Notes: generated by a model not told the origin, from the letters alone. A DNA stretch of 64,000 nt from Guillardia theta CCMP2712 (GCF_000315625.1 NW_005434664.1:748131-812130); one strand, 5' to 3'. Counted from the first letter of the stretch, positions 37,562 through 45,168 are shown. Numbers and translations are program-made.

Positions 37562-40500
37562 TCAAGTGTACCTCCTGCTGATCCTGTCGGCCATTACTCT
37601 GCTGCTTCCACTTTGTCAGCGAGTGAAGCTGCAGAAGCAACGAGACCTTGAAGCAGCTGCGAGTTTGCTCGGTTTTGTCAGAGTCTTGCTCCTCGACGTC
37701 GCGGAGGCCGGGTACACGTCATCATCGTTGGAGACGCGCTCACGTCTGCCAGCTAGTCAGGTGGCTCTCTTGATGCTCTAGAGCCTCACTCGACACGATC
37801 TGCCGCGTGCCGCCGCTCGGTGATGCAGTAGTTGTCGAGGAAGCTTTCATAGTCGATGAAACCAGTCTGTTGCTTGTCGAGATAGCGAGCAAACCTGCGG
37901 ATAGATGAGATGCAGAGCAGAGCAGAGCAGAGCAGAGCAGAGCAGAGCAGAGCAGAGCAGAGCAGAGCAGAGCAGAGCAGAGCAGAGCAGAGCAGAGCAG
38001 AGCAGAGCAGAGCAGAGCAGAGCAGAGCAGAGCAGAGCAGAGCAGAGCAGAGCAGAGCAGAGCAGAGCAGAGCAGAGCAGAGCAGAGCAGAGCAGAGCAG
38101 AGCAGAGCAGAGCAGAGCAGAGCAGAGCAGAGCAGAGCAGAGCAGAGCAAAGCAGAGCAGAGCAGAGCAGAGCAGAGCAGAGCAGAGGAAGGAAAAATGG
38201 GAGCAGGAGATGGGAGTGACAACTAGCAAAGGGGGAAGAGAGAGGGGAGTTGACGAGAGAAAAGGGAGGTAGCAGGGGAGAAGCTGAGGCGAGATATGGG
38301 TCATGAGATGGATAGAGATGAAGCCCGAAGAGGCGATCATGTGCAAGGAGGAAGAAGAATTTGAGAAGCGGCATACGTCACCTCCTGACTTGCTTCACTT
38401 CTATCCCCACCGGCAGCATCCCTACGAGCTGTCGAACGAAGTCGTCGATTGGAATCTTACCTGGTGAATATGAGGTGAGGAGGAGGAGGAGGAGGAGGAG
38501 GAGGAGGAGGAGGAGGAGGAGGAGGAGGAGGAGGAGGGTGAAACAAGAAACAAGAAAGGAGAGAAAGGGTAAGGAAGGGTTTGAAACAAGAACTTGATAC
38601 CGTTTAACTTCTCGTCGAGGGAGAAGAAGATATTGAACACTTCATCATAGCGATTCCTTCACTTTCAGTGAGAGGAGATACGACGGGAGTCTAGTAGAAA
38701 GAGCGCAGAGCAGAGCAGAGCAGAGCAGAGCAGAGCAGAGCAGAGCAGAGCAGAGCAGAGCAGAGCAGAGCAGAGCAGAGCAGAGCAGAGCAGAGCAGAG
38801 CAGGAAGGCAGTGGACAGAATCTTACCGTAAGCTCTTTCGGCAAGAGTCTTCTATCATTCTAATCTCCTCCCTATACTTCACCTGCAACGAGGTCAGGGA
38901 GCCCAGGGCTGCAGCCTTGGATGGCTGACCTCGTGCTCCGGCCTCTTCACCTCCTCCTCCCTCAGCCCCAGCATCTTCGCCGCCTGCCTTCGGATGTCTT
39001 TGCAGAGCTGGCAGCAACGGTATCATCAGCACAAGAACTTCTCGCTGCCCGTTGGGTCCCTCCGACGTCCCTTCCCCTTTCCTCGATCTCGACTTCACAC
39101 CACAACTCTCCATCATCGCCACTACCTCGGCCGCCGTGTCTGCAGACACCGTCCCTTCCATGAAGTACGACAACCCTGCCGTTGCGGTCAGCCGTCCAAC
39201 ATCCCCTGAAGACCTGCCTCTCCCCCGCCCCACCTGTCTCCAGCGCGACTCGCTTGTGCTCGGGGATCTTAATGTTCCCCTCGAGGACACCGTACCTGCC
39301 GGCACATCAACCTTGACCCTCAACTGCCTCCGCTGACATCATCTGCAGCTCCTGCGGCGTTATGAGCTTCTCGTGCAGCAGCCTCCACAGCGGGATCCTG
39401 AATCTCTCCGTCGGTCTCTCCTCCGACCGATCCTTCAGCCTGCCGATTTCTGCCATGAGGGTCTGCCATGATGCGTGAGATCGTGCGAAACTGAGGAAGT
39501 GACGGGGGCTACCTCACGCGAGCTCTCCTCTACTCCAAGATCGGCCAGGTCGTCGGCAGAGAGCTGAAGGGCAGCAGGTCAGGAGACGCCGCAGCATCGG
39601 TTGTCCGATCCTCACCTGGAAGAGGAGAGCAGACGAGTTGATGTTCGCTTGCTGGGAACAAGAGTCAGTCTCGAGGGATCCTAGGGAACTGGTAGCGAGC
39701 TGGACCTGGAACGCCGTCATGTAGCGCTGCAGTCCGAGAGTCTCCAACCAGATCAAGCTGTGGGATAAAGATGGTGATTCTACAAGTGCGACAATGGAAG
39801 ACAACAAGAGACGACAAGGGTTCCACCAACAAACTTCTCAGATTTTGCAAACATCAGGCTCGGACTTCCCGGCATCGCTTACATGTGTGTCGTAGTGTTC
39901 CAGCGGTCGGTCTGCCGGCCCTTCACGTCTGCGAACGCCTGGGACCATGATAGTGAGGCCCCGGTCGCAGCAGAGACAAGAACACCATCTCGTTGGAGTG
40001 CTGCCAAGTCGTCGACGACTCAACTCGCTCATGCTTGCTCCGTGCATCGTCAATCTCCCTCAGACGACCCGCAAAGACTCCAGAGAGTCTGAGCGACTTC
40101 TTCGCGTAACTGCAGACGGCATGACCGCTAGTGCACAACCTCCTCCACCATCACCTTGTCACCATCTCATCGAACAGCGCTTGCACTTTGTCATCTCCGG
40201 AGCTCAACACAGCAGAGTGGACCTGGTCAAGGTTGTCCCTGGCCTATATGGGAAGGTCAGAGAGGAGGAGGAGGAGGAGGAGGAGGAGGAGGAGGAGGAG
40301 GAGAGGGGGGATGAGAAGGACAGGAGGAGGAGGAGGAGAGGAGGAAGGGGAAGTGGAGTATGACAAGGAAGAAGAGGAGGAGGAGAGGAGGAGGAAGGGG
40401 AAGTGGAGTATGACAAGGCAAAAGAGGAGGAGGAGGAGGAGGAGGAGGAGGGCACGCGCTACCCTTTGCAGAACGGGGTCAAGGATGGGACGTGAAGCGT

Positions 40501-43500: not shown

Positions 43501-45168
43501 GAGCCCGACGTTCTTTAACTTGCTCCCTGTGTACCAGTGGAGGAAGTCGGCGGGGCCTTCGCCGTTGCCGAGAAGGAGCACGAAAACCTTGTGCTGCAGG
43601 AGAGGTTTGGTTATCTCCTCTCCCAGCTCCCTCGACAAGTTCGAGATGCTGGAAGGGTTCCGAGGGTCCTCGTACAAGTTGTCGATGGCATGGAGGAAGA
43701 GCTTGAGCGACCTCCTCGCCTCTGTTGGCCTCGTGGGCTGGCTGACGTGGAGGCGCGGGTTGAAGAACACCTCCCTCCCCTCCTCCTTCCTTGCCTCCCA
43801 CCCTGCTGGCAGATTGGGAAGCATCTCCCCCTCGTCTCCCTCGCTCCTTTCCTCGAACAAGTGCATCCCATGCAGGATGCTCATCATCGACGACGACGGC
43901 CCGTCCGGCATGCTGGCCACCTTGTTGATTGCCGACTGCACCGTCGTGGCCACCTTGTTCAGCTTGAGCAGCGGCTGGAAGTCTCCGGGCTCGCGATGAC
44001 TCGACAGCACCAGCCGATCAACCAGAGAGACCAAGCTGTTGTTCAGCTCAGTGTTCTTAACGTCGAACATCTTGGAGCAGACGTTGACTAGGTTGAGCTG
44101 GGAAGGAGCCACCAGCGTCGCTTCCAAGATCTTGTCAACCCTGAGCGCTATGACGTCGTGGATGTCTTGGAGGGAGTTGGGGGCATCAAGAGCGTGCTGG
44201 CTCTTGCTGGTCCAAACGACAGGCAGCTTCTTGAACTTGACATCATGCAGACAAGCTGACATCTTGTCACGGGTTGACTGGATGTACTTGGGGGTGTGCT
44301 GGTCCGAGAGGTGTCGCTCTTGCAGGAAGCACCCGAAGAAGAGCTTGCTCTTGTGGGTCTCGTACAGCCTCTCGTACAGCAAGAGCTCTCTCCTGTTGAT
44401 TCTTGTTATCCTCGGGTCCACCAGCACCACCACAAAGTCCACAGCCTGCGCGATCTTCATGAAGAAATCCTCCACGTCGTAGCTGTACGGGAGGTCGGGT
44501 GGCTTCATCGCGTGCAGGAACTCGTCAAACTCCATCATGCTCTCCTTGTTCACATCAATCATGTCGAACAGCTGCTCCACCTCTCTCCTCGACACCCTCG
44601 TGCTCAGGGCCTCCAACCCTTCCACGAACTCTTCTCGCGACAGGTAACGGTCGCTGTTCGTGTCCATGTCCTCGAAGATAGACCGTATCGACTTGCTGCT
44701 CTTCGGATCTTCGATCGTCTCCCGCACAACCTGAGCGACTCGATCCTCCTCGAACTGCGACTTCCCCACCACCGACGGCATCCTGATGAAGCTAATGAGC
44801 TGCGCGTCCATCTTGTCCGCCTCCACCGCCTCGTGCAAGCAGAAGTTCAAGCCATCCACAGCAGCCTGCAGTGAGTCGTTGTGCTCGCCTTGCAGCCCCG
44901 TCCTCACAACGACGGCCTTGTTCTCTGTCCCAAGACCCTTGTTCTTCAGCGTTGCGCCAAGGTAGTCCTCGATGAAAGTGCCAGCGAGGTCTCCGTTTCC
45001 AACCACGGCGATGCTGAGCTTGTCGCCATCTCTGACCCTGGGCTTCCTTGCGACTACTTCTATCAACCTGCCCAGCTCAACCAGGCCCTTCCCGCCGTCC
45101 TCGGTGCCATCATGCAGTTCGTCAATGATCCGCAGTAGCGCCGACGTTTCTCTCGTCGACTCCGCCAT
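37562..45168 (-). CDS. ~1900-aa multidomain protein: 3x (degenerate dynamin/EHD-like G domain with inserted EF-hand pair), WW, SAM, C-terminal EF-hands
   Basis: 1303-codon ORF continued by in-phase GT-AG exons. EF-hands [127 protein letters not shown]. Stop at 37562. Confidence 0.85.
37911..38186. repeat. (GCAGA)n microsatellite, ~55 units, intronic
   Basis: Direct reading. Confidence 0.97.
38705..38802. repeat. (GCAGA)n microsatellite, intronic
   Basis: Direct reading. Confidence 0.95.

Follow-up and report, generated by a model that had tools for sequence, protein, structure and literature searches.

Three tandem EHD-like modules with lost nucleotide motifs and EF-hand pairs in switch II, encoded by one cryptophyte gene, as a probable nucleotide-independent scaffold

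What can a dynamin-type module still do once all of its nucleotide motifs are gone, and what might control it in their place? Dynamin-superfamily proteins are textbook nucleotide-driven membrane remodellers, and pseudoenzyme versions, such as Mmc1, are only beginning to be recognised. The question is raised by a gene on the minus strand of a 64,000-nucleotide stretch of Guillardia theta CCMP2712 DNA (GCF_000315625.1 NW_005434664.1:748131-812130; hereafter the window, with positions counted from its first letter). A first-pass annotation had proposed that this locus encodes a giant protein built from three tandem pseudoGTPase modules, each with an EF-hand pair inside its G domain, together with WW, SAM and terminal EF-hand domains. 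We find that the complete coding sequence (CDS; 37786..45168) encodes a 1,732-residue protein with three modules related to the EHD ATPases, and we think it likely that these modules form a pseudoenzyme scaffold that acts independently of nucleotide and is tuned by Ca2+.

The protein consists of unit 1, a WW-like linker, unit 2, a low-complexity linker, unit 3, a SAM domain and an EF-hand pair, all features of the gene being on the minus strand. The three units are homologous and about 430 residues each. Unit 1 (residues 1-449; 43822..45168) matches unit 2 (residues 484-908; 42445..43719) in BLASTP at 1e-21 over 319 columns; spliced unit 3 (residues 1026 to about 1470; 39883..42093), which is spread over exons 1-9 and contains a degenerate EF-hand pair, matches unit 2 at 1.2e-17 and unit 1 at 4.4e-12, in line with its motif alignment. 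By these values the internal homology, which the first-pass annotation had described for units of about 400 residues, is far beyond chance. No transmembrane segment or signal-like N terminus was found in the 1,732-residue protein, which is predicted to be soluble.

The fold of the units was approached through AlphaFold2 models of unit 1 (predicted local distance difference test score, pLDDT, 79.0; predicted template modelling score, pTM, 0.78) and unit 2 (pLDDT 83.7, pTM 0.83). In VIA-align searches the top match of unit 1 was EHD4 (5mvf; Z 18.3, 287 residues), with model residues 6-399 lying on EHD4 residues 19-403, followed by EHD4 7sox (Z 16.9 at 3.1 Å over the G domain), EHD2 (16.9) and mitofusin (14.3). 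Unit 2 also matched EHD4 best (Z 20.6, 301 residues; 7sox, Z 19.4 at 3.1 Å), with mitofusin at 15.7. EHD4 thus stood 4-5 Z units above mitofusin for both units, and behind the EHD proteins came mitofusin, IniA, BDLP and dynamin. Foldseek agreed, placing EHD4 5mtv first for unit 1 (E 1e-7, probability 1.00), then EHD2, mitofusins, bacterial dynamins and dynamin, and ESM feature and shape searches with both units returned EHD/Dynamin_N clusters exclusively. The structural check that had been proposed for the units thus gave EHD4 as the best match of both modelled units. The match to EHD4 covers the N-terminal helices, the G domain and the helical domain; the extended G domain with a flanking helical domain that defines the dynamin-superfamily fold is thus present in the models, and each unit is a complete EHD-type module of that superfamily.

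The nucleotide motifs of this fold are lost. Strand β1 and the degenerate P-loop of unit 1 (44962..45021) align to the GNHSAGKSSF of active relatives, but the G1 motif GNHSAGKS has become GN-GDLAG in unit 1, GN-GEGPA in unit 2 and GD-RGGKL in unit 3. All three P-loops are one residue shorter than GxxxxGK[ST] and have no Lys-Ser/Thr. In G3, DTPG is replaced by RMPS, RAPA and VAPD in units 1, 2 and 3, respectively, and in G4, TKAD is replaced by CFLQ, CALP and CFLE; in alignments the same three motifs are replaced in every member of the pseudo-family. None of the units therefore has the intact G1, G3 and G4 of a working dynamin-superfamily enzyme. The loss of Walker A and DxxG from all three copies had been recognised in the first-pass annotation, and the alignments add the loss of NKxD/TKAD. 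A G-domain fold combined with the loss of nucleotide residues is what distinguishes pseudoGTPases, and the modules presumably no longer bind or hydrolyse nucleotide.

Which members of the superfamily are the closest relatives of the units? A profile of the halves that follow the EF-hand pair (profile A1) was searched against 1.84 billion protein representatives and gave 33 matches in all, in two groups. Proteins of the first group carry the EF-hand insert (P0002-P0007, P0014, P0015, P0019-P0023, P0026 and P0029-P0031). Those of the second have no insert (P0017, P0025, P0027, P0028, P0032 and P0033; E 4e-6 to 8e-4), and show intact GNHSAGKSSF, DTPG and TKAD motifs (more fully, GNHSAGKSSF(V/I)NW and F(I/V)DTPGL), hydrophobic C termini, and the motifs YPFDV and DL(I/V)FVFFDP. 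The EHD-like consensus given in the first-pass annotation thus turns out to be that of a real protein family. Pfam Dynamin_N scores 31-41 bits in this second group, against a cutoff of 27, and the sole matches of the group by sequence in the PDB are EHD2 (7e-8) and EHD4 (2e-6). The family is scattered over Paratrimastix (P0028/KAJ4463111.1), Gefionella (P0032), Mesostigma (P0027) and Rozella (P0033), and it appears to be uncharacterised. TbMfnL is, by its description, a dynamin-superfamily (DSP) family with C-terminal transmembrane helices (bioRxiv 10.1101/2023.06.28.546890). A word-based search with the unit alignment had P0014 as its one match and was probably dominated by EF-hand words.

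Profile-profile comparison ranked these relationships. Against the active family, the N-terminal halves of the units aligned with an E-value of 9e-15 (98.4%), and whole units from which the EF-hand insert had been removed gave 1.9e-25 in hhalign (99.7%, 275 columns), as predicted beforehand for EF-less units and the Dynamin_N/EHD G domain. Against the G. theta EHD alone, the units reached 1.7e-6 (89.9%) and the active family 2.9e-13 (98%); pairwise BLASTP between the units and this genuine EHD gave nothing significant. The hhalign values, and the hidden Markov model (HMM) search at E 4e-6 and weaker, identify the units as dynamin-superfamily homologues. Because the E-values rank in this way, we place the origin of the units in the membrane-anchored EHD-like family, which is itself related to the EHD proteins: on these alignments, the units descend from active EHD-like GTPases anchored to membranes at their C termini.

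In each unit the G domain is interrupted between strand β3 and helix α2, that is, in switch II, by an insert of 90-98 residues that consists of an EF-hand pair. The model of unit 1 has strand β3 (residues 125-129) and helix α2 (residues 232-242) flanking the insert, so that alignments and models agree with the position given in the first-pass annotation. Along unit 1, strand β3, in which G3 is lost (44770..44796; FIRMPS for F(I/V)DTPG), is followed by the EF-hand pair (residues 156-222; 44503..44703), and then by the resumed G domain (α2, β4 and α5, with CFLQ at G4) and the helical domain (43822..44493), from which the profile finds active Dynamin_N proteins. Pfam EF-hand_7 scored 65 bits, in three stretches; in the insert of unit 1, where it covers residues 160-222, EF-hand_7, EF-hand_1 and EF-hand_6 are all above cutoff. 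The pair in unit 2 is partly degenerate (about residues 655-722; 43003-43206), and in the model this insert (residues 150-240) superimposes on EF1-EF2 of ACF7 (Z 11.7, 2.5 Å). EF-hand matches of the insert in the PDB point to a pair of the calmodulin/troponin type, and the Pfam EH model reaches 16.4 bits on a canonical EF pair, below its cutoff of 22. Matches to FAP225 and RSP7 had raised a flagellar reading, which was set aside; they span the EF-hand pair alone.

How might such a protein work? We suggest that the modules keep the scaffold and assembly properties of EHD proteins and exercise them without nucleotide. Three EHD-like protomers in one chain would constitute a pre-assembled oligomer, which the SAM domain could extend. 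The EF-hand pair would occupy the former nucleotide-dependent switch and interface region, and through it Ca2+ may tune the conformation or assembly of the scaffold, in G. theta mainly through unit 1. The overall function would be that of a nucleotide-independent, Ca2+-modulated scaffold. Most probably the role is membrane-associated, given that EHD relatives form coats on membranes and that one relative, P0015, joins the module to a PLAT domain; no result obtained here supports a specific organelle. A bolder proposal is that the nucleotide switch has been swapped for a Ca2+ switch, the EF-hand pair gating the former G interface and Ca2+ transients driving assembly or membrane remodelling by a SAM-linked polymer of three-protomer chains in cryptophytes; this is possible, but we regard it as doubtful.

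Several results weigh against a Ca2+-tuned EHD-like scaffold. The units were undetected by Pfam Dynamin_N, EHD_N and DUF5600 even at E 10, whereas a genuine G. theta EHD (L011), the positive control, matches all three; in the units of the 1,732-residue protein Pfam saw EF-hands alone, and no GTPase family in the unit halves, again even at E 10. A profile of the C-terminal parts found chance matches and no EHD among PDB sequences. The alignments behind both AlphaFold models included the active family and may favour a G-domain fold. A prediction of the complex of units 1 and 2, made without alignments, scored 0.00, which speaks neither for nor against their packing. Finally, a scan of the G. theta protein found that only one of its eight EF loops (residues 169-180) is strictly canonical. 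Loops 205-216, 704-715, 1204-1215 and 1666-1677 fit a relaxed pattern alone, and the loops of units 2 and 3 and of the C-terminal pair are non-canonical, even though an EF fold is seen in the model of unit 2. With one strictly canonical loop in eight, it is doubtful that Ca2+ controls units 2 and 3.

These loops bear directly on the most serious alternative, a static, Ca2+-independent polymer or scaffold of dead modules and SAM, in which the EF inserts are plugs in the empty nucleotide site. It would accommodate the seven of eight loops that depart from the canonical pattern and the inserts of units 2 and 3, which fall below the Pfam single-domain cutoffs, and it has a parallel in Mmc1, a pseudoenzyme like dynamin-related proteins (DRPs) that has been described as a static scaffold. 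We nevertheless consider it unlikely. Unit 1 keeps one strictly canonical and one near-canonical loop, and both insert loops are strictly canonical in unit 1 of the Hanusia orthologue and in six relatives (P0004, P0015, P0029, P0002, P0026 and P0020), which argues for selection on metal binding; several other relatives scanned have one canonical insert loop or none. Because these relatives and Hanusia keep two loops, Ca2+ binding looks ancestral and partly lost in units 2 and 3.

Could the units instead bind nucleotide non-canonically and still act as NTPases, like some atypical G proteins? Units 1 and 2 retain the Thr-like position of switch I (GLGT), and the P-loop region of unit 3 contains a G-G-K. 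Against this stand the shortened G1 without its Lys-Ser/Thr and the absence of DxxG and NKxD/TKAD from all units and all family members. Moreover, the same genome retains active-looking members of the EHD-like family, L015 (G000:C41:61455-62359) and L016 (G000:C4:about 1011788-1012309), with GNHSAGKSS, DTPG and TKFD motifs. We therefore think nucleotide binding by the units very improbable, and return to the nucleotide-independent scaffold tuned by Ca2+.

How does this protein compare with known systems? The EHD ATPases (EHD1-4 and RME-1; 2qpt, 4cid, 5mtv, 5mvf and 7sox) have the same module, over EHD4 residues 19-403, and likewise combine it with a domain of EF-hand fold in one protein. In them, however, that domain is a C-terminal, NPF-binding EH domain, whereas here a calmodulin/troponin-type pair sits in switch II, nucleotide motifs and EHD_N/Dynamin_N/DUF5600 signals are absent, and each chain has three modules and a SAM domain. 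Since they lack EHD_N and DUF5600 signals as well as an EH domain and an ATP site, the units fall outside the EHD family proper; the membrane-anchored family (E 1.9e-25) is closer to them than the G. theta EHD is (E 1.7e-6). With the active membrane-anchored GTPases they share an N-terminal helix motif, YP(F/Y)D and a D-L-x-x-V-x-x-D-P strand; unlike them, those proteins keep GNHSAGKSS, DTPG and TKAD and are single modules ending in hydrophobic segments, with no EF-hand insert, SAM domain or tandem repetition. Miro/Gem1 also places G domains and Ca2+-binding EF-hand pairs in one chain, and there Ca2+ regulates a GTPase-fold protein; but its G domains are Ras-like, with at least one active, and are separated by the EF-hands, which do not sit inside switch II; it also has a tail anchor. 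Mmc1 of fission yeast mitochondria, a DRP-like pseudoenzyme that has lost its GTP-binding residues and is proposed to be a self-associating scaffold rather than a mechano-enzyme (bioRxiv 10.1101/2023.10.03.560745), offers a precedent for a pseudoenzyme scaffold in the dynamin superfamily. It differs in belonging to the DRP-like branch, in having a single module at the mitochondrial inner membrane, and in having no EF-hands, SAM domain or tandem repeats. The G domain of sarcalumenin, which is of the dynamin family and related to that of EHD proteins, is linked to Ca2+ handling (PMC7016017); by its description, sarcalumenin is an animal protein of the lumen of the endoplasmic reticulum that binds Ca2+ through an acidic region and has no EF-hand insert.

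In the literature (8.4 million papers and preprints) and in the protein and structure atlases searched, we found no description of an EF-hand pair in a dynamin-type switch II, nor of a tandem triplication of a dynamin-type module. Within that scope, the first-pass impression that no protein of this architecture had been described holds. Here, a conserved and expressed lineage has kept a whole EHD-type module under selection after the loss of every nucleotide motif; it has also gained, in the switch loop, a domain predicted by sequence to be of Ca2+-binding type, and has triplicated the module in one chain. If Ca2+ has indeed taken over the switch, this would be a natural example of a mechano-enzyme with a rewired input signal, and a compact system for asking what a dynamin scaffold does without hydrolysis. 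The protein, with a function that we infer from its sequence, should thus be of interest to the dynamin and pseudoenzyme fields.

Conservation was assessed in other cryptophytes and in marine sequences. The first full-length protein search returned the Hanusia phi orthologue P0001 alone, at 63% identity. The units are 65-71% identical between Guillardia and Hanusia, and the Ala/Pro/Gln-rich linker between units 2 and 3, recognised as low-complexity by its composition (residues 909-1025; 42094..42444), is 26% identical. This difference implies that the dead modules are under constraint and, as far as the two sequences indicate, under purifying selection. By tblastn, a 12.4-kb Tara Oceans marine metagenome contig (L014) is collinear with the whole protein. 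The mannose-6-phosphate isomerase gene beside it has its nearest matches in Teleaulax ("Tamp", 66%) and in another MMETSP entry, and the contig therefore comes from a marine cryptophyte. The orthologue search that the first-pass annotation had proposed thus yielded a Hanusia protein and a marine contig with the same order of parts and, on this comparison, the full architecture is conserved within cryptophytes.

The insert is also found in proteins of other layouts. A G. theta paralogue (L012:5773-9393, equivalent to G000:C3:349772-353392, plus strand) has a reading frame open over at least 1,206 residues and a Hanusia orthologue, P0002. It has a P-loop-like strand (TVLLVGGRN...), followed by hundreds of coiled-coil residues and extra EF-hands; next, LVQAPEL, which resembles β3, leads into an EF-hand pair, after which the dead G domain resumes. 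The paralogue falls in a second subfamily (P0003, P0007, P0020, P0026 and P0030) with a CPYDQ motif, and represents a second cryptophyte paralogue family with the same insert. P0015 (L013:458-3325, on a Logan contig of SRR24908258), at 955 residues, has one dead unit, with both EF loops canonical, fused to a PLAT/LH2 domain (28.7 bits, cutoff 23). The P0021 cluster (at least 90% identity) includes NCBI entries MGB1591528.1 and MGB1603748.1, which come from metagenome-assembled genomes (MAGs) labelled 'Promethearchaeia archaeon'; the clustering of these entries with the cryptophyte-type P0021 suggests that an Asgard MAG took in eukaryotic contigs during binning.

Beyond the units, the parts of the protein fared differently. 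The WW-like linker (residues 450-483; 43720..43821) has the first Trp of a WW domain, but the second is replaced, as it also is in the L014 orthologue. Its Pfam WW score is 17 bits (E 0.006) against a cutoff of 26.9, and a genome-wide Pfam WW scan did not pick up the locus. The segment is conserved in Hanusia, with 71% identity. The WW domain of the first-pass annotation is thus better called a WW-like segment. The predicted SAM domain was supported through the collinear L014 contig, whose unspliced open reading frame (ORF) 8948-9814 matches SAM_1 at 3e-9 (37.5 bits, cutoff 23) and SAM_2 at 1.5e-8 over residues 175-231; the G. theta segment (about residues 1482-1540; 39427..39757), spread over four short exons, aligns to this stretch without gaps. 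The C-terminal EF-hand pair (about residues 1652-1722; 37821..38656), in the last three exons, whose introns are inferred, likewise finds its counterpart in L014 (tblastn, 44% identity, E 5e-19), where the last ORF contains an EF-hand pair (EF-hand_1, 26.9 bits against a cutoff of 25.4). The terminal EF-hands of the first-pass annotation are thereby supported; their loops are non-canonical.

Is the long protein really the product of a single gene? The minus strand has an ORF at 41257-45168 (1,303 codons, 1303 residues), and every motif quoted in the first-pass annotation is present; 3' of this ORF, low-complexity DNA alternates with many short open segments. Public sequencing runs were mapped on 38810-44809 of the window, beside a (GCAGA)n repeat. 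RNA run X1 yielded one spliced contig, 5,525 nt long at a depth of 46, that spans the whole mapped stretch. It skips 16 segments with ends CT..AC on the plus strand, which correspond to GT..AG introns of a minus-strand gene, and a second study (X2) reproduces five of the junctions. DNA run X9 is colinear with the genome and retains the introns. The joined exons have an open frame with no internal stop, giving a CDS of 5,199 nt in 20 exons; the frame, reconstructed with the X1 contig, runs from an ATG at 45168 to a TGA at 37786-37788. Both the Hanusia orthologue P0001 and the corresponding ORF of L014 match this choice of start. At the other end, the X1 contig has a loose end at 38826 that resumes at about 38656, after which two more GT-AG introns close the frame at the TGA; the last three introns are thus deduced from GT-AG signals and this loose end. 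Of the span 37562-45168 originally assigned to the protein, the start side stands, but the CDS ends at 37786, leaving 37562-37785 as 3' untranslated region or flank.

The single contig, the open joined frame and the matching start lead us to conclude that the locus is one transcript and not several genes; it is a single cryptophyte nuclear gene, and it is expressed. RNA sequencing thus provides the exon chain that the first-pass annotation had wanted confirmed, and shows one transcript rather than the split locus that it had considered. That the long protein is an annotation artefact, made up of several neighbouring genes or of a decaying pseudogene, is extremely improbable: although the protein database search returned no protein of such length from this genome, and raw RNA run X13 mapped 2 reads only, with almost zero coverage, the deep spliced contig bridges the exons in an intact frame, the Hanusia and marine-contig orthologues keep the part order, and conservation is much higher in the units than in the linker. 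An in-frame intron of 48 nt inside the long ORF (41534..41581) is skipped in X1 RNA and present in X9 DNA. Its splicing takes out 16 residues immediately ahead of the first EF-hand in unit 3; because the intron is in frame and stop-free, it was invisible in the raw ORF and revealed by the RNA evidence alone. The final 37 or so codons of the long ORF (tail PPPSS...) are intron read-through.

Some minor features of the surrounding DNA complete the description. In DNA run X9 one base is missing at window position 41358, in the boundary region of the CCT-rich intron 41238-41342/41343, probably reflecting a difference in repeat or homopolymer length or an assembly error. A single pentanucleotide fills two introns of the gene, at a 99-100% match: a plus-strand (GCAGA)55 microsatellite (37912..38187) lies inside the last intron, and a plus-strand (GCAGA)20 microsatellite (38705-38803) lies in intron 17, both outside the exons. 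Other introns contain GAG/CCT-rich low-complexity DNA (38477-38537, 40262-40451 and 41267-41337). Finally, an exon for ribosomal protein uS5/S2 (36651-37325, plus strand; Pfam Ribosomal_S5 and S5_C, both about 1e-24) faces the gene's 3' end in convergent orientation, with only about 460 bp between the two stop codons.

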